Of a stretch of 64,000 bases of DNA, positions 3,401 through 29,053 are shown piece by piece. Source of the stretch: Phaeosaccion multiseriatum (lineage: Eukaryota; Protista; Ochrophyta, other classes); the NCBI GenBank assembly GCA_965112735.1, contig OZ218954.1, positions 1,922,001 to 1,986,000 on the forward strand, written 5' to 3'. The position numbers and the translations under genes are program-made. Within the stretch, counting starts at the first letter, position 1; the number at the start of each line of letters is the position of its first letter. Under the pieces are notes generated by a model. That model was given only the letters and a program-made list of their open reading frames with translations, was not told the DNA's origin and made no database searches.

Positions 3401-5538
3401 TCACAAATACATACTCTTCGGTTGATTCCCATAAGTTACAGCGTGCCCCCCACCCTCACAAATACATTCTCTTCGGTTGATTCCCATAAGTTATAGCGTG
3501 CCCCCCACCCTCACAAATACATACTCTTCGGTTGATTCCCATAAGTTATCGCGTGCCCCCCACCCTCCTCAAACAGGTGGATCGCTTCGAAGAGCTCTTG
3601 GGGCTGGACACGCTCTGGGGAGTTTGCTTGCACACGGCGGACACGGGTGTGTCGTCCGCCGCCGCGCTGTTCTTCATCCAGCTGCACATGCGGGTGACAA
3701 AGAAACGGACCGTGTGGGTAAGCTTCATCCATCGGTGCATGCAAGTCATCCACCTGCGCTATGGGGCGGTGGGGCACACGGCAGGAGCGGCGGAAGGCAG
3801 ACGACGAGGTCGACGGCGGCAAAGAGGAGCGGAGGAGCAAGGAGGGGAGAGGACGGGGAAGGAGCAAGAGGAGCAAGAGGATCCAGAGGAAGAGGAGAGT
3901 CTACGGCGAAAGATCGCTGGGGTAGCGGCGATGAGAGTGTGCGAGCGAGTAGTATGTCTCCTTCGCGGCTTCCTGGGCTCAGTCGAGCGGCCGACTCTGT
4001 CCCACAGCAGCAGCACGGGCGGAGGGGGGGGAGGGTGGGAGTCTGGTGGTGGAGGCTGGAGCAGCGTAGCTGCGGGGGGGAAGGCGCTCACGATGGGAGA
4101 GAACCACGTCAGCGTGTACCTGACGCGAGGGGAGGGCATGGTGTGGCAGCGCAAGACGCTCACCCTGTCCTACGTCTTCAAGAAGGGCGCCGTCTCGGTG
4201 GGCGAGCTGAGGGGGAGAATTGCGAAACAACTCGGTAAGTACATATAAGCGCGTGCGTTTCCGAGCAAAGGGTGTGGTGTGTGTTTTGAACATGTACCGC
4301 GCATCGTGGATGCCCTCCGCCAGAGCTGTACACGGGTTTTGCACACGCCTTTTTGGGGGGGAGGGAGAAGGCGAAGCACATGTCTTGAGCATTGCAGGAT
4401 TCTGAACAAGGTCCTTGAACTCTGACCCATGTGTCCAGGTGTGCCTCCCACGAGGATAAGACTGCAGCAGCAGTACGCAAAGCTGCCGCTGGTGTCCCCC
4501 GATTCCGACTCCCTTTCTCTGGAAAAGGTGAAGATGACTGGTGTCGCCAATGCCGTGCTACTGGACGAGCCACAAGAAGACACTCAAGGCTACCGAGCGG
4601 TGCCTTGGACCAAGACAGCGACGGGAGACCTCCGCAACTTTCCGCGGCAGCTGCTGAGCGGAAACCTTCGCCGTGCTCCTCGCAGTCCGGCGGCGGGGGT
4701 GGGGGCATGGGGGGAAAAGGCATGGGCAAGCAGCGGCCTGTCTCCGGACGGCAGAGGAGCCGACGAGAAGAAGGGGGGGGCGGAGAAGGAGGAGGAGGAG
4801 GAGGAGGAGGAGGAAGAGGAGGAGTTCGACTACTTTGGCCTCCTCTTCAGTATGCTCACTCAAACGGGCAGGGACCCATCCGGCAGTAGCCAGCAGGAGC
4901 AGCAGGAGCAACAGGACCTCGAAGGGAAGTTGGTGTCGGAGACGTGGGCGCTCTTGGAGAAGCTACCGGTGAATGAAGGCATAGAGCGAGAGCTCAAGAC
5001 TTTGGGAGGCGCGCTACCCACCCCAAGCAGCTGCAGCCCCTCCGAGAACGGCGACACAGGCATCCAGTGGGGCGCCACTGCTGTATCACCAACTGCTGCT
5101 CCTGTAACTGCTGATTGGGGCCTTCTTCTGAATGGGCAATGCACGCTGGGGCTCTTTTATCGGCTCCAAATCGTGTACGAGCTCGTGCGACCCTCATTTG
5201 AAGAGTTTGTTGTGGAGGACGAGAGGCTTGAGTCGCTTCAGTGGTGCGCCGGTTTTGTCGCCCTGGGGGGTGTACAGCACTTGCTTCGGCTGCTTCTGCT
5301 CTCGCCACAGCCTTCTATCGGAGACGGTGGCGGAGGTGGTATTGGCGAGGACAAAGCGGACTGTGGTGTGGCGTTTGACCTGTCGCTGTCCGTCCATCGA
5401 TCGTGCATGGCTGCTCTGATGAAGCTCATAACCCACTTCACCCTCTCGTCTCGGCCGGCGGAAGAGGAGCCCCTCCAGATCGGCGGACTACACGTGGAGG
5501 GAGACGACGAGAGCAAGGGTCAGGATCAGGATCAGGAT

Positions 5539-5949: not shown

Positions 5950-8900
5950 GGCAGCAGTGATGGCCAGGCGGACTTGTTGGCCTTCGCGGGCAGCACCAGC
6001 CCTCCACCCGACGCTGATGTTGTGCGTCACACCATGTCCCTCTTGGTGGCACTGACGCTGCACGACCACAGTCTCCTTGACCCGATCCTGACCTCTCCGG
6101 ACCTGTCGGCCAGTCTGCGCTACAGCATGCTGCAGACGCCGGAGTGCCTGGTGCGGAGGGAAGTGGCAGAGGGTCTGACCCGCATGTGCGAGCAGCTTCG
6201 AGCAGACACTGAGGTGAGGGAGGGAGGGACGGAGGGAAGGAAGAAGGGAGGGCCATCGCCATCCGAGGGTGAATAACTCGAGATATGTGTCTCCGTTGCT
6301 GGTGCTGAGCCCACGTGCTGACCCTGACCCTCGCCGCTTGTGTCTTTTGCGTTGTGTGCGCTTGTGTCTCTTGTTATGTGTGTGCACGCATCACAGGTCA
6401 GCCACCCGCAAGACCCTGTGGCGTTCTTCATGAGCGTCTTGCTGGAGGCGCTGCCCCTCGTGGGGAGGTTTGAGTCCTCCTCGGCCGAGTACCTTGCCCT
6501 CTTGTCGCGCCTGGCCGGGCTGGGCGGTGCTCTGGTCTCTGCTTCAGAGCAGAGCGGCTTGAGCTCCAAGCTTGCGGAGATGATTGTAAACAGGCCCGTC
6601 AGGGAGGGGAGTGACGAGGAGCAGGACGAAGTGCTGGGAGGCTACCTGCAGCTGTGCGAGGTGGTCATCCGCGGACTCGATGCGTCTGTGGAAGAAGAGC
6701 TCAAGGCGGCTCTGGGGGAGCAGCTGCTGGACGAGCTGCTTCATCACTGCTTGTTCTACCAAAAGGTAACAAGAGAAGCGGGGGGGGGGGGGGGATGGCT
6801 GCAGGAGGGGTGGGATGGGGGGAGCTAGCGCTCAGCTATGCTACATGGACCCATAATCAACACCTACTGCTTCGAAGCAGATTCTCTCTCTCTCTCTCTC
6901 TGTAGGGCTTCACAGAATTACCCCGTCTGACACCCTCTGCAACCCGCAACCCATCTGCCCGCACCCACCTTCTCCTGATAGCGAAACGCGCAGCTCCAGC
7001 AGCCGGTGCCGCTGAATGTGGCCCACAGCTTAGGCAGGGACGGCAAGGGGCTCGTCCCCCCCCCCCGGTGCAAGCACCAGACTACACGAGCACTGGCCTT
7101 TGCTCTCCTAGCGGAGCTCACGCACGGCTGCCCCGCCAACCTCGCGCGGACCGTGGCGGTGCTGCACACGCACCATCACCTGCACAGCACGGCGGAGGAG
7201 AGGCAAAGGCTGCGGAGGGGCAGGCCTCGGGCGGCGAGGAAGGGACTTGTCACGGGTGCTCTGAAGGTGTGTGTGCGCAGAGCCTGGTTGGTTCAGCTGC
7301 AGCCCCCACCTACTGAATGACCAACGAGTACGAACACTGTCTGTGATTTCCCCCCTCTTTCCTTTGTGAGCAGGGTTCAAGCAAGAAGGGGGCCACGACC
7401 TTTCCGTTGACGCACTATGGGCAAAGCGCTCTCGTCAGGCATAAGAGTGGGTATGTGGGCCTGAAGAACCTCGGCTGTATCTGCTACATGAACAGCACCC
7501 TGCAGCAGCTGTTTATGGTGGGCAAGTTCAGGGAAGGGGTGCTGTCCTTCCAAGAGGACGAGGGGGAGGGTCACAGCGAGGAGGAGAGGGGTGACGCGGC
7601 AGGAGAGGAAGATGACGTGGACAGGGAGAGCAGGAGGGCGAGCTCGCTCATGTGGCAGCTGCAGAATCTGTTTGCGCACTTGCAGGAGTCGGAGAGGGCG
7701 TTTTTCGACACTAAAGGTTTCTGTGGCGCTCTACGAGACTGGGGGGGAGAGCCTATTGACACCATGGTGCAGCATGACGCCAGTGAGTTCATCTCCATGT
7801 TCTTCCAGCAAGTTGAGGCGCGAGTCATGGGCACGAGGAAGGAGGACATTATCAAGGAATCCTTCGGGGGCGTGCTGAGCAGCGAACTCCTGGCAGAAGA
7901 GACCACCGAGGAGGAGGCAGAGGAGGGAGGCGGAGGAAAAGGGGGTGGTGGCAACGGGACTGGTGCTGGGGAGGGGGGCGAGTATCAGCGGTACTCGGAG
8001 AGCCTTCAGCCGTTCTCGTACATAAGCCTCGAGATGAAGAACAAGGGCAGCTTGTACGAGGCCCTGGACAGCTACATTGAGGGCGACATGGTGGACTACA
8101 CTTGGGAGAAGAAGGATAAGGAGACTGGGGAGGTGGTGAAAACGTCGCTGCCCACCCTCAAGCGGCTGTCAGTCAAGACGCCCCCGCAGCACCTCATTCT
8201 CCATCTGCAGAGATTCGAGTTCGACTTTGAGCGGATGGAGCAAGTCAAGATAAACGACCGCTTCGAGTTTCCCTCCGATCTAGATCTGTATCCGTACACC
8301 AAAGATGGCAGAGGAAGCAGCAGCAGCAGCAGCAGCCGCGGTGGCGGCGGCGGCGGCGGAGAGTCGGGGGCTGCGCTGACGCAGACTGAAGAGATGAAGG
8401 CGCTTGAGGGTGGGGATGAAGGTGCGGGCGACGGTGAGGGGGGCGACGTGTTGACAAGGGACCAGTGTCGTTACCAGCTGGCGGGCGTTGTGGTGCACAT
8501 GGGAACGGCAAACAGCGGACACTATTATTCCTTCATCCGGGAGAGGTGCGGGGAGAAGAAGTGGTACGAGTTTAACGATACCATGGTCACAGAGTTCAAC
8601 CCTGACGACCTGGGGGTCGAGTGTTTCGGGGGCGGCAGCAGCGACAAGAGAATGGCCACGTCCTCGCGTAACAGGAACGCCTTTATGCTCTTCTATGACC
8701 GCGTGACGCCCAGCCATAGTCCGTCCAAGACTGGCCAGGGGGCGGCGGAGGAGACGCACAGGGCAAGCATTCCCGGAGAGATTATGGGGGCGCTCGCCAA
8801 GGAGAATGCCGAGCTCTGGAGGGAAAAGTATGTGCTGGAACCTTTGTACTATGACTTCATGGAGCAGGTGCTGATGAGGGGTGGTGGTGGTGATGGTGGT

Positions 8901-15578: not shown

Positions 15579-18500
15579 CAAACCCGGTCATTCGTCCTTC
15601 TCCCTCTCCTTCTCCTTCTCCCTTTGCCTGTCCCCGTCCTGTGGTCCTGCCTGACCCTGCACTTACTTGCTTGCCCCTCCCTCCCTCCCTCTGAACAGGA
15701 TTTCTTTGGCAAGCCAGCGTATCTCACTGTGTCTGGGCAGCTCTCGGCGGAGACGCATGCGTGTGCCCTAGGCGATGTGTATACCTTCGGCCCGACCTTC
15801 AGGTGAGAAGGGCGGGCAGGCAGCAGCAGGGCAGGCAACAAGGCAGCAGATACTAAGGGGGAAAGGGCCTTGCGGTACTCGCTTTACTCGCCCCCGCACA
15901 TGCCACTGCCAACGCCACTGCCAATGCTGCTGCTGCTGCGGGCGGTGATATGGTGGTGGTATGGTGGTGAAGTTGATGGTGATACGCGGACCTCACACTA
16001 CCCCACACTCCGCTCCGGCCGTTATGTTCCGACCCACCCACCAGAGCCGAGAATAGCCAAACCACCCGCCACCTGGCAGAGTTTCAGATGATCGAGCCTG
16101 AAATGGCTTTCGCCGATTTAGAGGTGAGTATTGCATATGCAACACTCCGTTGGGGTTAACGTAGCACTTCGTTGGGGTTAACGTATCACTCTGTTAGGGT
16201 TAACGTAGCACTCCGTTGGGTTTAGTAGGGAAGGCCTACCATGTGTCTTGTTTGGCACTGAGCTGTGCTTGGGTAATTTTTCCGTCGTAAGGCAGTGATG
16301 GATGCATCTTGGTAACTTGTCCGTCTCGTAAGGCAGTGATGGATGCATCTTGGTAACTTGTCCGTCTCGTAAGGCAGTGATGGATGCATCTTGGTAATTT
16401 TTCCGTCGTAAGGCAGTGATGGATGCATCTTGGTAACTTGTCCGTCTCGTAAGGCAGTGATGGATGCATCTTGGTAACTTGTCCGTCTCGTAAGGCAGTG
16501 ATGGATGCATCTTGGTAACTTGTCCGTCTCGTAAGGCAGTGATGGATGCATCTTGGTAACTTGTCCGTCTCGTAAGGCAGTGATGGATGCATCTTGGTAA
16601 CTTGTCCGTCTCGTAAGGCAGTGATGGATGCATCTTGGTAACTTGTCCGTCTCGTAAGGCAGTGATGGATGCATGTTGGTAACTTGTCCGTCTCGTAAGG
16701 CAGTGATGGATGCATCTGCATGTGTTCGTTGTGCTACGCGTTCCCCTCTCCCCACCCCCCGCTCTTCTCTTGCTCTCGCCCCTCTTTTCCTGGTGCCCTG
16801 TGATATACGCTAAATGCCGTACGCCCCTTGCGTTTCTCAATGCTGTACGCCCCTGATGTTGCAATGCTGCACGCCCATCACGTTTCCATCCCTTACGTTT
16901 CAATGCCTTACGTTTCAATGCCTTACGTTTCAATGCTGTACGCCTCTTTACGTTTCATCACAGGACAACATGGACAACGCAGAGGCTTTCGTGAGGCACG
17001 TTGTGGCCTACGCCATGGAGCAATGCCAAGACGACATTGTTTTTTTTACAAAGGTGAGAGAGGAGAGGAGGAGGAGGAGGAGGAGGAGAGGGAGGGGCCC
17101 TTTATTCTCCTCCCTTGGCCTCCCTGCGTTGGAGGGGAGGAGAGAGTGTTATGTTAGGCTTTCCTCTGCTGATCCCCGCACAAGTATGGACGGAGGGGAG
17201 GGGAGAAGAGAGGGGAGGGGAGGAGAAGGGAGGGGAGGAGAAGGGAGGGGAGGGGAGAAGAGAGGGGAGGGGAGGAGAAGGGAGGGGAGGGGAGAGGGAG
17301 GGGAGGGGAGAAGAGAGGGGAGGGGAGGAGAAGGGAGGGGAGGGGAGAGGGAGGAGAGCGAGGTGCTCATTAAAAGTGACCCCTGCCCCCACACCACAGG
17401 GGGGAGGGGAACAGAGAAAGTGAGTCTTGTTACTGCCCTGTCTGGTTGCTGCCCCCCCCCACCCTTTTTGGTACGGGGGCAGGAGACTGCTCTTGTGCCC
17501 GCCGCCATCACACCTTCCTCTCTCTCACCTCTCGCCCGTTCTTTTTCTTATTCTTATTCTTATTCTTGTGCTTGGCCTTGTGCTACGGTATCGTCGGTCC
17601 CATCACTTGCCATGCCCATATACATTCAGTTCGTGGAGAAGACCCTTCCCGAGCGGCTGGGCGACATTCTCAACAAGCCCTTCGCGAGAGTGAGCTACAC
17701 GGAGGCAGTGGATATGCTGCAGAAGGAGATCGCCAAGGTGAGCAGCAGCAGTTGGTGGTACAGCAGCAGCAGTTGGTGGTACAGCAGCAGCAGTTGGTGA
17801 CACAACAGCAGCCATGTCCGTGAAAGGGTGGGGAGGCGGTGAGGCCGGTGTCTGACTCCGACGTCGACACGTCTTATCCATCTGGTAACCCTCTCCTATT
17901 CCATAGCTGAACTCTCTCCTGTTGCTCTCCTGCAGGACCCGTCGAAGTGGCAGTATCCTGACGTCAGCTTCGGGACGGACCTGCAAACAGAGCACGAGAG
18001 GTGGCTGGCAGAGGCAAGTGTGCGAGGGAACGCCTTCTCTTTCTCTCTTCGTCTCTTCCACAGCTTCACGTATTGTCGGTGGTCTCTTCACAAGCCCGCT
18101 AGGCTCAACTGCCCCACCCCCTCCCTTCCCCTCCCTTCCCCTCCCTTCCGCTCCCTTCCCCTCCCTTCCCCTCCCTTCCCCTCCCTTCCCCTCCCCTCCC
18201 CTCCCCTCCCCTCCCCTCCCCTCCCCTCCCCTCCCCTCCCCTCCCCTCCCTTCCCCTCCCTTCCCCTCCCCTCCCCTCCCCTCCCTTCCCCTCCACTCCC
18301 TTCCCCTCCCTTCCCTTCCCCTCCCCTCCCTTCCCCGCCCCTCCCTTCCCCTCCCTTCCCCTCCCTTCCCTTCCCATCCACTTCATTCCCCTCCCCTCCC
18401 CTCCCCTCCCCTCCGCTCCCCTCCGCTCCCCTCCGCTCCCCTCCGCTCCCCTCCCCTCCCCTCCCCTCCCCTCCCCTCCGCTCCCCTCCCCTCCCCTCCC

Positions 18501-19092
18501 CTCCCCTCCCCTCCCCTCCGCTCCGCTCCCATCCCCTCCCCTCCCCTCCCCTCCCCTCCTATCCCTGCACCGCCCATGTACCCGCATTCATTCCTCTGCG
18601 GTGGTGTGGATATTTTGATTGTGGAGCAGGTCCAGTTCGGTACAGCCACCTTCGTTTACAACTACCCGCGGGGCATCAAGGCCTTCTACATGCGCGACAA
18701 CCCCGACGGAAAGACAGTGGCAGCAATGGATCTGTTGGTGCCGGGGATAGGGGAGCTCATTGGAGGCTCGCAGAGGGAAGAACGCCTAGAGGGTAAGTGT
18801 GGGGAGGGGAGGGAGAGGGGGAGGGGGGAGGAAGAAGAGCAGGGGGAGGGGGAGGGAGGGGGAGGGGGAGGGAGGGGGAGGGGAGGGGGAGGGAGGAGGA
18901 AGCAGGGCAAGCAGCCCCCCCCCGGTTGGGGTCTTGGGGGTTTCGGGTAGTCTTGGTTGTCCTGAATGTCCTGAATGACCTGACCCCTTGTGTTGAAATG
19001 ATGTGACCGGAAAGAAGGGGACGGAGCTCGGCGAGGGGCGGGGGGGGCGTGGTACTGCCGCATCATCAATCCCTTTCCTTTGGTACTTGTGG

Positions 19093-19467: not shown

Positions 19468-20597
19468 GCGTGTCAGCGGGGAGGGGGTTCTTGCTAATTG
19501 CTTCTTGTAGCGCCATAGCGCCATTACTGCTGCTGCTGCTGCTGCTCCTTAAACAGATTTTGCGGGGTGGGATGGGATGGGATGGGTGGCCGTGTAGTGA
19601 CGGGTAGGGCGAGGAACGCAGGAGAGGAGAGCGGAGGAGAGGAGAGGAGAGGAGAGGGGAGGAGAAGGAAGGGCTCTCCCGATGCATTATGCTGCGACAT
19701 CCCAGCGTGTGCATGCACCGCAGCGGCTGCAGAGGGGCTGCTGCATGCGTAGAGAAGAGGGGAGGAAGAGGAGCAAGTGAAGCAAAGTTGAAGTTGAAGT
19801 TGGTGGAGGTTCAACGCTGAGAGGCACAGAGCCGGTGTGTGTGGGTGTGATTTCCCCTCTTCTCCCTCCGTCGCCTTGCTTAGGGGGCTTTTCCTTCCAG
19901 CAAGAAAGCATCGGCCATGGCTCAATGTTCCATGGCTCAATGGTCGCAATAGATTCTCATTATTAACATTCCACCACCGCACCCAAGCAAGTAAGCTTAC
20001 GTAAGTAAGTATGCGAGCACCGCCCAACCTATACAAATACAGTGAAACGCCACATCCGGCCCCCTTGCCCTGCCTCCTCCTCCCAATAGTCCATAGTAGC
20101 ATCCCCCCCCCCACCTCCCCTCTCTCTCTCTCCCTCTCCCCGTGCTCTGACTGGCACTGATGAAACCACAACCCGTCCATAGTAAGTGGCACAGGCCCGG
20201 ACATGTCTGGGCCTCCCTCCCCTCCCGTCTCCAGCCCTCCCTTCCCTTCCCTTCTCTTCTCTTCTCTTCCTGCCTTCCCTTGATGGGCAGAATCTGGCTC
20301 TCTGGATGCTGTTGCTGCTGCTGTTGCTGCTGCTGTTGCTGCTGCTGAGACTCCAAGCGCTACCTTCCCCTTGTGGCTGTGTCGCCCCCCCTTTGTACAA
20401 GACATGCCCTTCCCTCCTCCCTCCGCCCCCCCTGGATCGATCACCTCCCCGTCTCGCAAAGCTCTGCACTTTATCTCCCCTCAACCCCCGAAGATTAAGA
20501 ACATTCCCCAGCTCGGCGCCGAGCAGGCATATATCGACACATCGACATGTCGACATTATCGACCATCTCGACATATTATCGACCATCTCGACATGGA

Positions 20598-22241
20598 CTA
20601 CTCGGAATCATCGTCGATGACGATGATTCTGGCTCTGCGCTTCTTCCCGGGGGGCTTGTTCGTCTCGCCTCCTCCGTCCTCCCCTGCTGCTCTTCGCTTC
20701 TTGACACGAGGCGAGGCCTTCTTCTTGGGCGCGGCCTTGCCCTTGGTGTGTGTGGCTGTCGCCGCCGCCGGTCGTCTTGCCGCAGGCTTCTTCTTGTTCG
20801 CCTTCGTGGTCGTTGCCGCCGGGGGGGTATGGTCGGGCTCTTGGGTGAGGCTTGCCGGCCCATACCCCGCCGCGCGTGCCCTATCTTCTGCCGATGCCAA
20901 CTCACGCAGCCTCTTGGAGTTGCCGCCGTAGCCACTGGAGAAGGAGGTGATCTTCACGTCTGGCTTGTACTCCTCAATGCTTCCTGCTGTCGCGCCTTCT
21001 CCTCCTCCTTCCAAGCGTAGCTTCAAGTCGTGCAACGTCATGAGCGTAATTTTGGAGCTTGCTCGCGCTTTGGACACTTTGGAGAAGCCTGGCTCCTTGC
21101 CCACCAGCAAAATGTCCGTCACTCCAGAGATAGCCGTCGTCACCCTGCCCCCCAGACTTCTGATCAACGCCTTGGTCCTCTCCTTCCCCAGGTTGAGGCC
21201 CACGCCGCCCCCCACCTCCGGGAACAAGCCCGTGAGGACAAAGGTCTTGCCAGCGAGGGGATGGGGGTTGATGGCTTGAATCTGAAACTGTCTTCCTCCA
21301 GTGGTGGTCATAGCCGTGGAGGCCGGGTGCTGAACAAGCTCACTACTGCCAGCGCGGGCAGCAGCCGCGCCGCCAGTCTCACCGCCAGCCGCGCTGGAGC
21401 TGCTAGCACCGGCAGGATGCGCCCCATACTGCTGCTGCTGCGGCTGCGGCTGCTGCTCCGGCTCCGGCACTGGCTTGGCCTTGGCTTTGGTCAAGCGCGC
21501 CCAACAGGACCTGTCCATGACTCGGTTGATCACCTCTCGCCGGGCCGCGGGCGGGAGTACGTTAAAACCACAGAGCAGAATCTCATTCATACTCAGCAGC
21601 GCGGCCTCGAACAGCTTCATGTCTTGACAAACGTCCGGGTCGGGCAGCCCCAGCCAGATCTTGCTGGGCACCCTCCAGCAGCGCAAGTGGACGAAGCGGC
21701 CGTACCCTCCGCTCTGGGCATCCAGAGAGCCGATCCGAATGCCTCCCTTGGGAATGGGCTCATCTGGCGTTTCACAGTGCCTGTACTTGCACACGCTACG
21801 CCCCGACACTGCCAACTCCACCCGGTAGGAGGGCATCTCCTCTTGGGCCGCTTGGGAGTAGTAGTCCCAAGGCTGCGTCGGCGGGACTTCGGTGGAGTCC
21901 CAAGTGGTGTCGTCCACATCATAGTCCTCGTAACCCTCCTCGTAGCCCTCCTCATAGTCCTCGTCCTGTTCCTCCTCACGAGCCACGCGGCTCTTGCTCT
22001 TCATGGCGGCGGCAAAGGATGTCTTGATACGCCCCGACGTGAACATCTCCCGCACAATTTCGAAAGATGTCTGAATCTCTCGAAACTCAGCAGGGTCGCC
22101 TCCCTTGTCGGGGTGGGCCGAGAGGATCTTCTTAAAGTAGGATTTTTTCACCTTGGAGAACTCATCCTTCAGTCCGGCGCATCCATCCAGGTCCCCCGCG
22201 CTCACCCCCAGGCACCCGAGCAGTTGGCTGAGGCTCTTCAT
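20598..22241 (-). CDS. Intronless protein with J-domain (HPD), PARP-type zinc finger, BRCT domain and basic C-tail
   Basis: Single ORF, first ATG at 22241. J-domain: VKKSYFKKILSAHPDKGGDPAEFREIQTSFE (HPD at 22115-22107). zf-PARP: YRVELAVSGRSVCKYRHC...IPKGGIRIG...FVHLRCW (~21827-21675). BRCT: LAGKTFVLTG...LGGRVTTAISGVTDILLVGKEPGFSKVSKA (~21257-21010). Confidence 0.85.
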   Translation of the reverse strand: MKSLSQLLGCLGVSAGDLDGCAGLKDEFSKVKKSYFKKILSAHPDKGGDPAEFREIQTSFEIVREMFTSGRIKTSFAAAMKSKSRVAREEEQDEDYEEGYEEGYEDYDVDDTTWDSTEVPPTQPWDYYSQAAQEEMPSYRVELAVSGRSVCKYRHCETPDEPIPKGGIRIGSLDAQSGGYGRFVHLRCWRVPSKIWLGLPDPDVCQDMKLFEAALLSMNEILLCGFNVLPPAARREVINRVMDRSCWARLTKAKAKPVPEPEQQPQPQQQQYGAHPAGASSSSAAGGETGGAAAARAGSSELVQHPASTAMTTTGGRQFQIQAINPHPLAGKTFVLTGLFPEVGGGVGLNLGKERTKALIRSLGGRVTTAISGVTDILLVGKEPGFSKVSKARASSKITLMTLHDLKLRLEGGGEGATAGSIEEYKPDVKITSFSSGYGGNSKRLRELASAEDRARAAGYGPASLTQEPDHTPPAATTTKANKKKPAARRPAAATATHTKGKAAPKKKASPRVKKRRAAGEDGGGETNKPPGKKRRARIIVIDDDSE

Positions 22242-22466
22242 CGTGGAGGTGCTCTGTCCCAAGCGAGAACCCAAGCCTCTTCTTAGAGCGCTTCCCTTCA
22301 AGCTCTCTCCTGCTCCCCTTCTTTCTTTAGAGGAGCTTCTTCAAGCTCTTTCCTGCCGCCTCCCTTTTGCTCCCTCAATTTAGTTTTGACAGACACCAAA
22401 TTGCAAAAAAAAGAGCCTTCCATTTGGCGTTCGTATCACCAACTGCCTCACATCAAACGGAAATAG

Positions 22467-22503
<37 letters not shown>

Positions 22504-22558
22504 TCCCTCTCCCCCCCTCTCTCTCTCACCCGGCCTATAACATAGCGTCTTGATCATC

Positions 22559-23920
22559 ATGTTTCGTGTGTCCACCTTACCACCAACCTTGCGCGAAGAG
22601 CTGAAGGACATGCGAGTGAGTCTTCTCGCCTTGAGGAAGGAGCAAGCTCTCGCACAGAGAAAGATGGACACTGTGCAGGAGGACGTCAAGGAGCTGAAGC
22701 AGGCCTTCCTCATGCTGTGCGATCTAATGGTGGGAGAGCTCCAGGTGCGTCGTGGTGGGGCTTGGCATCGAGGTCCGTGTTGGCTATACCTCATTTTGCC
22801 CACATCTTTATACTTTATTCTCTTTGCAGAGGGTGGATAGGGAGGGCCGTTCAAGATGTCGACGGTTAGCGGCGGGTACAAAGAGGCTGCTTCTGGAGGA
22901 GAAGGGGGAGAGAGAGCTTTGGCAAGCCACAACCATGAGCAGCAGCAGCAGCAGCAGCAGCAGGAGTTGCAGCAGCACCCCCACCACCACCACCTTCTCG
23001 CAGGAACAGGATAATGATCAGGATATCGACGAGAATGGAGATTGCACGACCGTCGTCCACAGGAGTGTCAGCAGTTCCCCACCCCCAGTCAACAAGACGG
23101 ACGCTCCGTCGTCCACGGCCGATATGAGCCCCGCACGCAAGACAAGCAGTGGTAGCAGGAGCCCACCTCCGCGACGGCGCAGTCAGCCCCTCCACGAGAG
23201 ATGTGATGCCTGCTCAGGCTGCAGGGAGCGCTGGCAAGCCATGTCTGTGTGGCAAAGTCAAGAAGAAGGGGAAGGGGAGGATGTGAAGGAGAGGTTGCAG
23301 CACCTGGAGCGCGGCCTCAAGTACCTTCGCAAGCAGCGGGTGCGAGACTTCGAGGTGCGAGAAAGGGCAGGACAGTGCGGTGGTGGTGGATCGGCATAGT
23401 GATGACGGAGGGGAGACCTACAGAGTGCCCAATAGTTGCTTGCGTGGGGGTCGCCTTTTTAAGCGCTGTCCCTGGTCGCTCTGTCGTAGCAAGCTAGCAA
23501 CCACAGTGATTTTTGCAAATGTACACTCGTTCTTCCCCTTTTGCCAGGCCTCATTTACCCCCCTCCCCTCCTTCTCCCCAAAACTCCCCCCCAACCGGTC
23601 CAAACACGCAGCTTCTTCACAAGGCTCTGGCACCGCAAAAGCCCTACAAGGGTCTCCTCAGGCAAAGTCTTTCGCACAAGCAGCAAATGACCGCCATGGA
23701 GGAGCGGCTGCGCTCGCTGGAGAAAGGATTGAGACAGGCGCAGAAAGACAGCAGACCCGTTCATGCGGAGGGGGGCGGGGAGGCGCTCTGCAGCAGCAGT
23801 CCTAAGACAGACGAGGCGGTAACAAGACCCGCAGCAGCAGCAGCAGAAGCAGAAGCAGAAGCATCAGCACCAGCAGCACCAGTAGCAATAGTATCGGATA
23901 CCACGCGGGGACAAGAATAG
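22559..23920 (+). CDS. Hypothetical coiled-coil protein, 3 predicted exons
   Basis: Three phase-compatible GT-AG exons (~22559-22745, 22830-23354, 23612-23920). Heptad-like segments LREELKDMRVSLLALRKEQ, VKERLQHLERGLKYL and MEERLRSLEKGLRQ. No recognisable family. Confidence 0.55.
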
Positions 23921-24143
23921 CGTACTACTCTGTCATGAAGCAAAGCCAAAGCAAAGTCAGCACCGCAAGAGGAGACGCGGCGGCGGTGGAGCGGCCAAGA
24001 TGTGTATCACAAAGAAAACGTGCGGTTGTTGGGGAGCAGATGACATCCGATGTATGCGTGCTTCGAAAAGAAAACACATGTACTTTAGACACACCCAGGC
24101 GGTGAGGCAGTCAGGCAATCACACAAAATCAGGCAGCGGCACG

Positions 24144-26261
24144 TCAAAGCATGCTGCGCCCCTCGTCTACACCCTGCCCTGCCGCGGCTCTGGGAGGAGA
24201 GGCTGACCCCCTCGATTCCATCGTCCAGCCATTGACCCTGGGCAGCTCTTGCTCGTGCTCATGCTCGTGCTCTTGATCTTGCTGCAAGCGGCTGTGTCCG
24301 AGGCGGGAGGAGGCCCCAGGCCCACCAAAGCGCTTAAACTCCCTCACGAGCAGCACCACAAGCAGGATGGCGAGGCTGGCCCCCGCCGCCCCTAGACAAG
24401 CCGCTGTACCGTTGGACATGACATTACTACTTGTCGGCACCACAGGGCTGGTCGATGTCGTAGTCTGAGGCGTCTCAGTGGGAGGAGGTGGTGAACCAGC
24501 GCTACCCCGGCCCCCTCCGCCTCCTCCCCGCTCTGGCGATGGTGCCGTGGTCCCTGCTGCAGCGCCATTGTCGCCTGCCCTTCCGCCTCCGTCCCTCCCT
24601 CCCTTGGGCGTCTCGTGGTGGATCGAAATACTCAAGTCAGCCTCACACAGATCGGACTGCCTCTCTCCACTCTCTACCGACTCAGCGAAGCCAATCTTCC
24701 TATTGGAGTAGTCAAAGGCCGTGTAGTACTGTCTCAAGAACGTGTCCCCGAGTATCCAGGCGTCGCCTTCCTGCCCCTGCATGGCAACAATACACAAGGC
24801 ATCGGTTCCTTCCGACTCGCTGTCAGTGGTTAAAAAGTCGTCCAATGGTATGACCAAATCGCTCCCCGACAGCGAAAGCATCATTCCTCCGACTTCCATT
24901 TCGATTGTGCCCAGGGGTTGAGAGCATTCCACAGCGAGGATCGCTCCAGCCTCCCCACAGTCCACAGTTTTCTCTACGGCTGAGCTTGAGCGGCCGTACA
25001 CCCCTTCCTCCACCATAAAGCACAAGACTTGTCCCAGCTGGTCGGCCACCTTTCCGATGGCAGCATACGGTCCTATGAGCATGCTGGTACCTGTGTCCAC
25101 CATTGCCTCACTCGGTCCCGTCGTCACGGGCGCATTGCCTCCCCCCACGCGCAGCGAGTCAATCACCACCGACCAATACCCTAGACCGAAGCTGGTGAAG
25201 AGCGGCACGTCACACCAATGGAGACACCCCTCGTACCTGCTCTGGTCCACCGCTCCCAGCGTCAGCTCTCCTTTCATGACCGCCCCGTCTAAAGCTGCTG
25301 CTGCTCCTGCTGCCTCGTCGACGTCAATGTCCCCAAGGTACACCCCAAAGACCCCGGAAGGCACCACCCCTTGCTCCACCAGCTCGCCGAAGGGCGGCAT
25401 GGTTTGGGTGGTAGACAGCTCCGTGAAGCCCAGTCCCATCACACCATCCACACCCCCACAACCGCCCACCAGGGTCAGAGAGGCCAGCTCCCCGAACGTG
25501 ACGGGCGCCGCGACCCCGCCCCACTCCAACACGTCGATGGACAGAAAGCCTCTAGCGGTGGTGCCATCTTGGTACTCAGCTGCAAAAGGGGTACCGACGG
25601 GCTCGTAGGTGGACGTGGCGGAGGAATCGTAGAGTTTCTGACCTGCGTCACAACCGTCGGTGCAGGAAACGGAGGGGACCCACAGGTCTGCACTCCCCGT
25701 GTCGAACAGCACGTTGAAGGAAACCTGTGTGGGGAGTGAGGATGGCAACAGAGCGAAGAGTGAGAGAGGGAGACGAAGGTTTGCGGAAGACAGAGAGAAA
25801 AGAGAGGAAGGAAGAGAAATGCACGCATGCATCTTGTCGCAAACGTACCGGGGGTGTGCCCAAGGCGATCTGTCCATAGTATTCCATGTTTTCGCAGTCC
25901 ATGAGCTGAAGCTGCCCTGGAAGATGAAGCCCAAAACGAAACGGGGGTCACGGGTTAGTCTATACTTACAAGAGCAGAGCGCGCGAGAAAAGCATACACA
26001 CAGCGTTATCTTTCCATCCTCGCCCTTCTCCCGTACACGTCCCCTACCTGCTGCTGTTCCAGTCTCTCCAGAGAGCGAGCGGGCAAGTGATTTCCACAAG
26101 CGGTCTCCCTTCTTCCTCGAATGAAGAGGGACAGACATGGCCTCGCCACCGGTGGTTAGCTTCCTTTTCTTAGAGGTAGACCGAGCCCCTGGTCGGGAAG
26201 CTGCTGCTGCCCCATATACCGCTGCAGGGGCTGTCGCTATCGGAAAATACGGATGCTGCAT
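24144..26261 (-). CDS. Pepsin-family (A1) aspartic protease with C-terminal transmembrane anchor; 5' end uncertain
   Basis: NMEYYGQIALGTPP|VSFNVLFDTGSADLWV, DGVMGLGF, second catalytic motif AMVDTGTSMLIGP and WILGDTFLRQYY.AFD..N.KIGFA. These are followed by a Ser/Thr linker and the TM segment AACLGAAGASLAILLVVLLV. Introns at ~26048-25918 and ~25848-25725. No signal peptide was found downstream of an ATG. Confidence 0.88.
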   Translation of the reverse strand: MQHPYFPIATAPAAVYGAAAASRPGARSTSKKRKLTTGGEAMSVPLHSRKKGDRLWKSLARSLSGETGTAAGRGRVREKGEDGKITLCVCFSRALCSCKYRLTRDPRFVLGFIFQGSFSSWTAKTWNTMDRSPWAHPRYVCDKMHACISLPSSLFSLSSANLRLPLSLFALLPSSLPTQVSFNVLFDTGSADLWVPSVSCTDGCDAGQKLYDSSATSTYEPVGTPFAAEYQDGTTARGFLSIDVLEWGGVAAPVTFGELASLTLVGGCGGVDGVMGLGFTELSTTQTMPPFGELVEQGVVPSGVFGVYLGDIDVDEAAGAAAALDGAVMKGELTLGAVDQSRYEGCLHWCDVPLFTSFGLGYWSVVIDSLRVGGGNAPVTTGPSEAMVDTGTSMLIGPYAAIGKVADQLGQVLCFMVEEGVYGRSSSAVEKTVDCGEAGAILAVECSQPLGTIEMEVGGMMLSLSGSDLVIPLDDFLTTDSESEGTDALCIVAMQGQEGDAWILGDTFLRQYYTAFDYSNRKIGFAESVESGERQSDLCEADLSISIHHETPKGGRDGGGRAGDNGAAAGTTAPSPERGGGGGGRGSAGSPPPPTETPQTTTSTSPVVPTSSNVMSNGTAACLGAAGASLAILLVVLLVREFKRFGGPGASSRLGHSRLQQDQEHEHEHEQELPRVNGWTMESRGSASPPRAAAGQGVDEGRSML

Positions 26262-26305
26262 GTGTCTTTCTTCGGTTTTCTCTTCATTCCCCCCCCCCCC
26301 CCCCA

Positions 26306-26991
26306 TTCCTTCGCCAACTGTGAGTATCGCGGGCGGGCGGGGGCTTTTGACTTGAGCGAGTTGGGCCGCCCATACCACCCCCCTCCAGGCTTCGAGCTTT
26401 AAAAGCTTCTGGCCGCAGGCCAGCGGTCTGGGCTTCAGGCTTCTCAGGGGGGCTCAGGGGGGCTCAGGGGGGGGGGGGGGAGAGATTATGCAGGCTTCTG
26501 GCCGCAGGCCAGCCCCGGGCTTCTTGCTTTCGGCCGCAGGCCGCCTCAGCCAGGCTTCTTCTGCTTATCGGGGGGGGGGGGCAGAGAAGCCTCGCGGGGA
26601 GCCGATCCGATCCCTACAGTTTCGCTCAGTTTATAAGGTGATTCCTATTAAGCAATTTTCCCTACAAGAAGCAACAAGTGACCAAGAGCGTGGTACGGGA
26701 GGAGGGAGTGCAGGACCAGCTCCGCGGTTGAGCCGACCCAGGAAGGCGCGCTCTCGCTCCGAGAGCCACATCTGGTGGCTGCAGCTCTGCAGCTGACGAG
26801 ACGGCGAAGTCTGGTCAGGACGTGGCCCTTGGTGGTGGAGGAGCCAGTGCGGCCAGTGCGGGAGACCACGTGCTCGGCGAGTGCGTGTAGGAGCGATGGC
26901 ACGTCCTGACCAGACTTCGCAGTCTCGTCAGCTGCAGAGCTGCAGCCACCAGGAAAGAAAAACGCTGGCAGTTCCTTCGCCAACTGTGAGT
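26306..26991. repeat. Perfect 20-bp direct repeat TTCCTTCGCCAACTGTGAGT at 26306-26325 and 26972-26991, 666 bp apart
   Basis: Exact sequence match seen. It encloses G-runs, three GCA-loop mini-hairpins and the 53-bp inverted repeat. Confidence 0.8.
26772..26952. ncRNA. Long inverted repeat (53-bp arms, 1 mismatch, 75-nt loop); candidate pre-miRNA/hairpin RNA
   Basis: 26772-26824 (ctggtggctgcagctctgcagctgacgagacggcgaagtctggtcaggacgtg) is the reverse complement of 26900-26952 except at one base. The fold is directly visible; an RNA function is inferred. Confidence 0.45.
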
Positions 26992-27231: not shown

Positions 27232-28339
27232 TCAGGCCCACCCCGCCTTGCTCAGCAGCGCCCAAGCGATCCTCCTGCGCTGCGCCGTCATGTCCGCCTG
27301 ACGCACCTCAGTAATGGGCAGGTCCTCGCTGATGTAGCTGGCGAAGGACACGGCGAACACCCCGCAGTCGCAGCCGTTCTGCTGCTGCGGGGTGTTGGCG
27401 GGGGGTGGGAGTGACTGCCAGCCGGTGGTGTCCATGGGCCCTGCACACGATAAAGAGTAGAGCAGATGAGAGAGGGTGTAGAGGAGGGAACACAACGCAG
27501 CACACCAGGCTTGTTGGTATACGAGTATAGTATGTAGCAGTCCAGTCATTTGGTCTACACTACATGATGAATGTGAAGCACAAAACACATCCATCTACCG
27601 TCGACTTACTCTTGAGCTTGTCCACGTGCTCGTCCGCGAGCCAGCGCATGAGGGCTTTGCGCGCTCCCTCCCCACTGCCCCCCATGCTGTCGTAGTACTG
27701 CACCACCTTCTTCTGCACGTAGATGACCGCCAGGCACCAATGCATGTTGCCCACATTCACCGGTATGATGACCTTGTCGCACTTGAAGATGTCGCCCCCC
27801 ACCACCTTGTTGCCCCTTGTCCACCTGCGCACTCCCATGAAGTTGTAGCCGTCCTCAGTGAGCTTGGCGAAGAAGAAGGAGTTGAAGAAATGGCTGGGGA
27901 GCCGCTTGTCGTCCAGCTTGCACAGCGCCTTGTCGTCCTCGCCCATGAGCTGAATGTACAGGTTGATCACCTCGTCGTTCAGCCACGTCAGGGGCAGCAG
28001 GCAGCGGAACTTCTCGCGGGAAATATCGGCGTTGAACAGCGTAAACAGGAGCTCGTGGGCGGGCCCACCCTCTAAGGCCCTGTCGATGGCTGCATCTGCT
28101 TCGGCTGGCAGCCCCCTCTTCCTCTTGCGTAGGGCCTTGTTCCGCTGCCCCTCCCCTGCTGCTGCCGCCGCTGCCACTGCCGCCCGCTTCGCCTCTGCTG
28201 CCACTGCTTCTCGCGCAGCCTTTATTTTCATCCTCTCATCCACTGAGTGGATCACATCCTCGGTGCTGTGGCTGTAAGATCTGGGCAGGTAGAGACTGGA
28301 GAGCTTGGCGGTGAGCGAACCCACGGAAGGTTCCGCTGT

Positions 28340-28371
<32 letters not shown>

Positions 28372-29053
28372 GTGCGGGTGCTGCTACTGCTGCTACTGCT
28401 GTGGCCTCTCCTCCTTCTCCTGCTGCTCCGGGGGCCGGCGCCACCGACGCCCCAGCATCTCCCGTCTTGGGCGATACGGCTGACGACGCCCGAATCGCCT
28501 CGATCTCAGCGAGTCTGGCCTCTATTTCGGAGTTGTCATACTCAGCTGGGGCTCTCCTGATGGGGCTCCGGACGGGATACCTATCACTGTTGCTCCCGCC
28601 ATCACCTTCTCCCGTAGATACGTCCCCCGACCCCGTCCCCCATTTGGCTCCCGCCCGAAAGTTCAGGCTCTCAATGTTGCCATACGCTTTGGAAAAGAAG
28701 GAGTCAAGCGATGGCGTTGGCTGCGAGGCTTGCCTCTTCTCCGCCAGCTGGTATTCGTCTAATAGGATCACAGCGTTAAAGGGGACCGGGGGAGGGGAGC
28801 ACGTGAGCGAAAGCAATCTCGATGAGAACCTGGGTGAGACACCCTCACCTCGACTCGAGACAAGTCTCACAGAGTTTATGTTCTGTGTGAGCAGGTCCAT
28901 GAGGCCTGCCCGACTGAGGGGCGCCGCCCTGCCCCCGACGCCTTCGCCGCTACGTGAGGTTGAGGGAGGCATGAAAACACGAAAACACAAAGTGGCACAC
29001 ATGCTCACACCCCGTCAAGGTTACGTAAGCTTAGGTTGATTGCCATAAGTCAT
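27232..29053 (-). CDS. Ulp1/SENP-family SUMO protease (peptidase C48)
   Basis: WLNDEVINLY, HFFNSFFFAKL, VRRWT, IIPVNVGNMHWCLAVI (catalytic His), YYDSM (Asp) and PQQQNGCDCGVF (Cys). Intron at 27609-27441. A short first exon MTYGNQPKLT (29053-29025, intron 29024-28950) is phase-compatible but tentative. Confidence 0.92.

Follow-up and report, generated by a model that had tools for sequence, protein, structure and literature searches.

What would a protein do that combines, in a single chain, a J-domain, a PARP-type zinc finger and a BRCT domain? The question is raised by a gene at positions 20598..22241, on the minus strand, of a stretch of 64,000 nucleotides from the ochrophyte Phaeosaccion multiseriatum (assembly GCA_965112735.1, contig OZ218954.1, positions 1,922,001 to 1,986,000; hereafter the window). 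An earlier inspection of the letters alone (the sequence-only reading) had taken the product for a non-catalytic nuclear adaptor that brings Hsp70 to damaged DNA or to SUMOylated repair complexes. We found that the three domains have the predicted folds and that their architecture and functional residues are conserved in a family of eukaryotic proteins. On these grounds we propose, with moderate confidence, that the protein is a nuclear class C J-protein that would dock on nicks, gaps or 5'-phosphate ends and load Hsp70 onto the proteins bound there.

Reading frame and domains

The gene is a complete coding sequence of 547 amino acids (aa) plus a TAG stop codon in one unbroken frame, with the start ATG at 22241 and the stop at 20598-20600. 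The list of open reading frames (ORFs) extends this one further upstream, to a TTG at 22301 on the minus strand, and the ATG at 22241 was taken as the start because an alignment with 90 homologs puts the N-terminus of the family exactly there. Since every conserved block shares one frame, the coding sequence consists of a single exon. The uninterrupted ORF described earlier, for which no strand had been given, was thus confirmed, and every element listed with it was present (HPD, the acidic linker, C-x4-C...H-x2-C, GKTFVLTG, PRVKKRR, KKRRAR and IIVIDDDSE). An exact-match lookup of the 547-aa protein returned no record.

The domains were examined with Pfam, with a family profile of 91 aligned sequences (the query and its 90 homologs) run against PDB sequences, and by structure comparison of an AlphaFold2 model built on the family alignment. 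Pfam placed the BRCT domain of the single sequence just over the curated cut-off (PF00533; E 2.3e-4, 21.7 bits vs. 21.3), whereas zf-PARP (PF00645; E 1.9e-4, 22.5 bits vs. a gathering cut-off of 39.3) and DnaJ (PF00226; E 7.6e-4, 20.0 bits vs. 27.8) scored below theirs; the best zf-PARP score of any relative was 39.2 bits. Weak as they are, these three Pfam matches do not depend on one another. Comparison of the query with PDB sequences by phmmer gave the BRCT of the Thermus NAD-ligase (1l7b) at 4.5e-6, and also the RFC1 BRCT and Sis1-type J-domains. The family profile matched the BRCT domains of LigA (1l7b, E 6.1e-13) and RFC1 (2ebu, E 6.5e-12), the zinc fingers of PARP1 (E 3e-10), the J-domains of Sis1 and DNAJB (E ~4e-8) and those of T antigens (E ~1e-5).

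The predicted local distance difference test score (pLDDT) of the model was 86-98 in aa 1-80, 130-250 and 320-460, with disorder in between; its predicted template modeling score (pTM) was 0.58, a value not interpretable on its own. Foldseek aligned the modeled domains with PARP1 Zn1 (TMt 0.67-0.69), the RFC1 BRCT (TMt 0.69) and the Tim14 J-domain (TMt 0.68, root-mean-square deviation 2.6 Å). With VIA-align, the BRCT matched that of yeast Rfc1 in an RFC:PCNA complex on gapped DNA (7u1a_A; Z 10.7, 1.6 Å, 86 aa, 30% identity) and that of human RFC1 (Z 10.1, 4.0 Å, 95 aa, 27% identity), and aa 136-243 matched DNA-bound PARP1 Zn1 (3oda_B; Z 9.5, 1.8 Å, 80 aa, 29% identity). The J-domain, zf-PARP and BRCT named by the sequence-only reading were therefore all borne out by the family profile and by structure, each being modeled confidently and matched to known structures. 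Its placement of the BRCT in the RFC1/NAD-ligase class was also correct, the best sequence and structure matches being LigA and RFC1.

The J-domain occupies aa 1-70 (22032..22241) and comprises helices I-IV, a basic helix II (KVKKSYFKK) and HPDKGGD at aa 43-49, with the HPD codons (aa 43-45) at 22107..22115; it was recognized by Pfam, the family profile and Foldseek, and its pLDDT was 86-93. The helices in the model lie at aa 4-10, 24-42 and 50-68. DnaJ, zf-PARP and BRCT were the only Pfam domains of the query, which has no G/F region, DnaJ zinc-finger-like region or DnaJ C-terminal domain. In its fold, its HPD, its basic helix II and its lack of class A and B regions, the protein matches the class C (type III) J-proteins. 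T antigens likewise have their motif as HPDKGGD.

The PARP-type zinc finger is complete and spans aa 136-245 (21507..21836) by Pfam, profile and structure. The motif YRVELAVSGRSVC precedes its ligands, C-x4-C ... H-x2-C (C151, C156, H185 and C188), and R148, R169 and Y180 lie within it. Because the Zn1 alignment spans 136-243, the stretch past H-x2-C is the second half of the finger with an inserted helix (aa 208-218), and not a separate domain. In front of the finger, the alignment and the model show a conserved helix at aa 122-133 (21843..21878), with the family motif TPSWEYYxEAA. The finger resembles PARP1 Zn1, as well as Zn2 and the DNA ligase III finger, in its fold over aa 136-243, its CCHC ligands and its 27-29% identity. 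It differs from them in several respects: the family has one finger where PARP1 has a pair, the first knuckle is C-x4-C or C-x8-C instead of the C-x2-C of PARP1, the inserted helix and the pre-finger helix are additions, and no WGR, catalytic or ligase domain follows.

The BRCT domain, of the RFC1/NAD-ligase type by phmmer, profile and structure, covers aa 319-415 (20997..21287), including T337-G338, K353 and K388. Straight after the TG of the phosphate pocket, the loop between beta1 and alpha1 holds a Gly-rich insertion, LFPEVGGGVGLNLG, at aa 339-352 (21186..21227). The best sequence and structure matches of this domain, the N-terminal BRCT of RFC1 and the C-terminal BRCT of bacterial LigA, share with it the positions of RFC1 T415, G416, R423 and K458. 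Unlike them, the family BRCT has the Gly-rich loop and is joined to a J-domain and a zinc finger and not to an AAA+ clamp loader or a ligase. A conserved extension follows at aa 427-460 (20862..20963), with the motif I..FS.GY.GN and two helices, as seen in the alignment and in the model (pLDDT 82-94).

The remaining segments are disordered. An acidic, Tyr-rich linker at about aa 86-120 (21882..21986) was identified by its charge and a pLDDT below 50; its net charge is -13 over 49 aa, and about 70% of relatives likewise have a net negative linker. A Pfam match to PF14812 falls on this linker and was rejected as a low-complexity artifact. Between the finger and the BRCT, aa 249-318 (21288..21497) form a low-complexity linker rich in Q, A, S and G (pLDDT 30-58) that is not conserved and holds a CAG-type repeat; tandem repeats lie at 21429-21468. 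The basic tail, aa 461-538 (20628..20861), was delimited by charge and a pattern scan, and carries KKRR clusters resembling a nuclear localization signal (NLS) at aa 514-517 and 533-536, within PRVKKRR (aa 511-517) and KKRRAR (aa 533-538). The net charge of the C-terminal region is +12 over 101 aa. Neither PARP catalytic nor WGR domains were detected by Pfam in the query or its relatives, and the ordered parts of the model are all accounted for; DNA ligase adenylation and OB domains were likewise absent by Pfam from the query and the 90 relatives. The protein is thus non-catalytic by Pfam and by the model, as had been supposed.

Conservation and spread of the family

Conservation was counted by column over the 91 aligned sequences. 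HPD[KR] occurs in 89 of them (H43 and P44 in 89, D45 in 90), the F53 and R54 of the J-domain are kept in 90 and 86, and the positions of K32, K33, K37 and K38 in helix II are mostly K or R in the relatives. In the zinc finger, C151, G178 and W189 are invariant (91), R169 is present in 90 sequences and R148 and Y180 in 89; the ligands H185 and C188 are kept in 78 and 76. Alignment of the hidden Markov model (HMM) to PARP1 F1 pairs R148 with R18 and R169 with R34, two residues that make up the "phosphate backbone grip" of the Zn1-DNA structures, and Y180 lies in the loop stacking on the exposed base pair. These arginines, and an aromatic or aliphatic residue at the tip of the loop that precedes the His, are features that the family shares with PARP1 Zn1. 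In the BRCT, T337 is kept in 85 sequences (Ser in five more), G338 in 90, K353 in 88 and K388 in 89, and the motif TG.FPE.GGG occurs in 84. The HMM alignment to RFC1 pairs T337, G338, K353 and K388 with T415, G416, R423 and K458, which, according to nuclear magnetic resonance work on the RFC1 BRCT with DNA, bind the 5' phosphate.

Four features are peculiar to the family in comparison with PARP1, RFC1 and LigA: the pre-finger helix, the longer first knuckle (C-x4-C in the query, C-x8-C in most relatives), the Gly-rich loop and the segment after the BRCT. The loop (FPEVGGGxGL), directly after the TG, adds 8-9 residues relative to LigA and RFC1, and defines a BRCT subtype with a conserved Gly-rich loop beside the phosphate pocket. 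Ahead of the domain stands a near-invariant motif, FVxPVPGxNGA (21243-21287, aa 319-333), which the profile aligns with residues 106-135 of Rfc1; the RFC1 BRCT needs an N-terminal extension for DNA binding.

A word search for homologs found 126 proteins, 34-49% identical over some 80% of the length. An exhaustive HMM search of 1.84 billion representatives, which unlike the word search can reach longer fusions, found 599 at E<=1e-30, the best 150 of which all had E<1e-99. As drawn by these searches, the family is sharply delimited. Its named members include the diatoms Seminavis, Attheya, Cyclotella and Stephanocyclus; other stramenopiles (an ochromonad, Chrysoparadoxa, Aureococcus, Pelagophyceae sp. 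CCMP2097, the brown alga Nemacystus and MAST-3); the green algae Cymbomonas, Pyramimonas and Chloropicon; the red alga Porphyridium; the fungi Chytriomyces and Hyaloraphidium; and, in Holozoa, the ichthyosporean Sphaeroforma arctica. The architecture is kept in many algae, in chytrids and in an ichthyosporean, a unicellular relative of animals. No animal, land plant or dikaryan fungus was found among the named members, most members being unnamed. Relatives are also present in transcriptome collections (MMETSP names).

At E<=1e-3, Pfam recognized the BRCT domain in 84 of the 91 aligned sequences, zf-PARP in 74 of them and DnaJ in 69. Optional extra domains were SAP in seven, additional BRCTs in four, and PHD, zf-CW, chromo and WW in one each; all of these except WW are readers of DNA or chromatin. 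The exhaustive search supplied 108 more representatives, many of them fragmentary, and all three motif sets were present in 67. No enzyme was fused to the family core in the exhaustive-search matches examined, and the ten longest of the 108 had no enzyme domain; one match of 1255 aa, to whose N-terminal part Pfam assigned no domain, may result from the merging of gene models. In the ESM Atlas, searches by features and by shape returned only the family's own cluster, together with LigA and RFC1 through the BRCT. One phage contig encodes, at 4050-5267, a protein of 405 aa that begins with membrane helices, continues with an exonuclease-like region and ends in a BRCT of the LigA type, the only part that it shares with the family.

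Members are already in public databases under the names "hypothetical protein", "J domain-containing protein", "BRCT domain-containing protein" or, wrongly, "DNA ligase". The orthologs so labeled in Seminavis and Porphyridium have no ligase domain by Pfam, and the label was transferred on the strength of the BRCT alone; the present analysis corrects the names of several such entries.

The maximum-likelihood tree was star-like with weak deep nodes, so vertical descent and transfer are not separable. The Phaeosaccion protein has no close relative in it (best identity 50%). Diatom members fall into two well-separated clades, of which the Cyclotella/Stephanocyclus clade has an extra BRCT (PF12738/PF16589), and this split suggests old paralogs from a duplication within the family. 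The Aureococcus and Chytriomyces orthologs are located on large chromosomal contigs, have ordinary nuclear genes as neighbors and contain small introns. In a single case, that of Aureococcus, the ortholog adjoins Tfb2 (TFIIH p52; 6492-7926 of the locus examined), a nucleotide-excision-repair and transcription factor, and this neighborhood is probably due to chance.

The C-terminal peptide and the surrounding DNA

The protein ends in IIVIDDDSE (aa 539-547, 20601..20627), which the sequence-only reading had taken for a SUMO-interacting motif (SIM). The pattern is indeed present, with a hydrophobic IIVI core and an acidic DDDSE flank at the extreme C-terminus, and composition by itself is an unlikely source of it, because a run of IIVI plus acidic residues arose in only 0.2% of shuffles of this protein. 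Comparison of the tails, however, marked it as lineage-specific: it has no counterpart in the 90 aligned relatives, loose matches are scattered over 10 of the 91 tails, and the tails of relatives mostly finish in basic clusters or SAP domains. The codons also border a related DNA repeat. A TCGA-rich tandem repeat of period 20 and 2-3 copies (20533..20594) begins 4 nt past the stop codon, with a unit of about ATGTCGAGATGGTCGATAAT on the strand of the gene, and the IIVIDDD codons (ATC ATC GTC ATC GAC GAT GAT) carry its ATCGAC/GTCGAT motif. TCGA occurs eight times in 120 nt here, compared with 2.7 per kb in the window, and four copies of GTCGAT lie at the repeat, compared with 14 in the whole 64-kb window. 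Since the IIVIDDDSE codons abut and resemble the repeat, the peptide looks like a by-product of repeat DNA, and may be a young, repeat-born tail. The SUMO part of the earlier proposal was thus not supported, and it is improbable that the peptide draws the protein to SUMOylated repair complexes.

An ORF of 482 aa at 27560-29008 on the minus strand, about 5 kb from the gene, encodes a Ulp1/SENP SUMO-protease catalytic domain (PF02902, E 1e-19), and its closeness to a gene with a SIM-like C-terminus is most likely a coincidence. The neighboring ORF at 24144-26378, also on the minus strand (744 aa), contains a whole aspartyl protease domain of eukaryotic type (PF00026, E 4e-59) without a break of frame, which makes it doubtful that, as had been claimed, no other gene in the window consists of a single exon. 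A weak class II aminoacyl-tRNA synthetase match (PF00152, E 4e-7) was found in the plus-strand ORF at 17922-18950, which probably represents a single exon out of a longer gene. On either side of the gene there is simple-sequence DNA: a (CT)n microsatellite (about 30 units) at 22469-22527, about 230 bp upstream of the start codon, and a (TGC)n/(TGCTGT)n array at 20307-20347, about 250 bp downstream of the stop.

The only public runs that cover the locus, four in all, come from one sample and are genomic in behavior, with contigs that are collinear over intergenic DNA and show no splice joints. At 20787 (C in the window) and 20813 (T in the window) all four genomic runs had G, which changes K485 to N and T477 to P in the disordered tail, as an allele or strain difference would. 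The word depth of the contigs was about 2.6 times higher at 20354-21084 (the 3' third of the gene) and 23894-25400 (the aspartyl-protease gene) than at 21055-22459 (the 5' two-thirds), probably owing to haplotype differences that split the assembly graph. Contigs across the locus end at low-complexity stretches, and one contig connects 21012 with 25295 through 28 unrelated low-complexity letters.

Proposed function and its meaning

We propose that the protein is a nuclear J-domain co-chaperone of class C (type III) that is targeted by two modules sensing DNA strand breaks. The PARP1-type finger would seat on an exposed DNA end or nick, with R148 and R169 gripping the backbone and the Y180 loop capping the bases, and the RFC1/LigA-type BRCT would hold a 5'-phosphate or a recessed 5' junction through T337-G338, K353 and K388. 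The long disordered linkers would let the N-terminal J-domain reach proteins at the same lesion, where the HPD loop would trigger ATP hydrolysis by Hsp70, so that Hsp70 clamps the lesion-bound proteins and remodels or evicts them. The basic tail would give nuclear import and, probably, non-specific affinity for DNA. Tails are net positive in 88% of relatives, and clusters of the K[KR]x[KR] type occur in 62 of 91; basic NLS-type tails are thus common across the family, in agreement with the nuclear-import tail described earlier, and the tail of the query fits nuclear import. Of the adaptor function first suggested for this protein, delivery of Hsp70 to damaged DNA fits, as far as sequence conservation can tell, the near-invariant HPD and the residues aligned with R18/R34 of PARP1 and T415/G416/R423/K458 of RFC1; delivery to SUMOylated complexes is not supported. 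Cryo-electron microscopy has shown that the Rfc1 BRCT contributes to a second site for DNA, at which 5' duplex ends are bound (PMC9293004). Hsp70 is already connected with single-strand-break and base-excision repair: in human cells it associates with PARP-1 and XRCC1, and both APE1 and Pol beta are stimulated by it (reviewed in PMC7313471). Delivery of Hsp70 to breaks agrees with these published links.

Several observations weigh against the proposal. The Pfam scores of zf-PARP and DnaJ for the single sequence are under the curated cut-offs, the zinc ligands have been lost in a few relatives, and the query is short of five residues (PxPGx) of the otherwise near-invariant pre-BRCT motif. The Gly-rich insertion at the phosphate pocket could shift the ligand of the BRCT, for example to poly(ADP-ribose) or a phosphopeptide. 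The candidate clients, stalled or trapped repair and replication factors, are entirely hypothetical. Most of the remaining probability falls to close variants of the proposal, in which the role is coupled to replication or the BRCT recognizes poly(ADP-ribose) or phosphoproteins.

The same design could serve replication and not damage, by reading the 5' ends of Okazaki fragments, nicks or post-replicative gaps while Hsp70 recycles clamp, clamp-loader and polymerase complexes. The closest BRCT structures are indeed those of Rfc1 on gapped, nicked or 5'-recessed DNA (PMC9293004), and PARP-type fingers bind any nick. However, no PIP-box-like (PCNA-interacting peptide) motif was seen among the conserved blocks, and sequence cannot separate replication from damage; we regard a replication role as rather unlikely. 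It is somewhat less likely still that the ligand of the BRCT is not DNA but a phospho-protein or poly(ADP-ribose), like that of XRCC1 BRCT1 or the TopBP1 BRCTs, so that recruitment would be second-hand and the zinc finger the sole direct sensor of DNA. The T-G...K pocket is a phosphate pocket in other BRCTs too, phosphopeptide-binding BRCTs (MCPH1, TopBP1 and Rad4) matched the model at Z 8.5-9.5, and the conserved Gly-rich loop by the pocket is absent from RFC1 and LigA, but significant sequence matches were to the LigA/RFC1 class only, at 27-35% identity compared with 10-18% for the phosphopeptide-binding BRCTs.

The DnaJ score below the Pfam cut-off would suit a protein whose J-domain is not a chaperone switch and which acts as a scaffold or regulator at breaks, like XRCC1. 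Yet HPDKGGD, the basic helix II and the F-R of helix III are among the most conserved columns of the family, and contact with Hsp70 is to be expected because this constraint on the J-domain is hard to explain otherwise; we consider such a scaffold very improbable. An origin from a virus or mobile element, or a product that serves organelle DNA, might be suggested by the single exon in an intron-containing genome and by the patchy, algae-rich spread of the family. Against a viral origin, family-specific patterns matched unrelated BRCT proteins only, and no member, in a scan of IMG/VR, the orthologs with their small introns have housekeeping genes around them on large chromosomal contigs, and the GC content is even throughout the 64-kb window. 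Against an organellar role, the tail is NLS-like, and there is no room for a transit peptide because the J-domain begins at residue 1. These origins are largely refuted and are, in our judgment, the least probable of all the explanations considered.

The proposed break-directed J-protein would join a known class of J-proteins by a new kind of targeting. DNAJC2/ZRF1 (SANT), DNAJC9 (histone binding), the polyomavirus large T antigen (origin-binding domain) and CbpA of E. coli similarly tether a J-domain to a module that chooses the site; to our knowledge, none of them uses a zf-PARP or BRCT domain or targets DNA strand breaks. XRCC1 is alike in being non-catalytic and BRCT-bearing, with an NLS and long disordered linkers, and in acting at single-strand breaks, but it is recruited by poly(ADP-ribose), scaffolds enzymes and has neither a zinc finger nor a J-domain. 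No published description of the J-domain, zf-PARP and BRCT architecture was found in full-text literature searches, whose coverage leaves out most subscription journals, and the PARP-family surveys examined make no mention of it. The statement that no protein with this architecture has been characterized therefore agrees with the searchable literature: the protein is a putative J-domain adaptor with an undescribed targeting module, whose relatives are database entries of uncharacterized proteins.

For two decades, co-precipitation and stimulation experiments have connected Hsp70 with base-excision and single-strand-break repair, and we know of no factor that places it at a lesion. A putative Hsp70 switch fused to two modules of the break-sensing type is a testable candidate for this missing link, and the family occurs in transformable organisms, such as diatoms and Sphaeroforma. 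More tentatively, the family may be what is left of an ancient eukaryotic route that takes Hsp70 straight to nicks and gaps to strip or reset stuck proteins, a route that would persist in algae, chytrids and ichthyosporeans but have disappeared from animals, Dikarya and land plants; we think this broader picture possible but doubtful. In animals, p97 extracts trapped PARP1 or topoisomerase adducts. If the proposed route is real, the family would provide a chaperone-based counterpart to that extraction.

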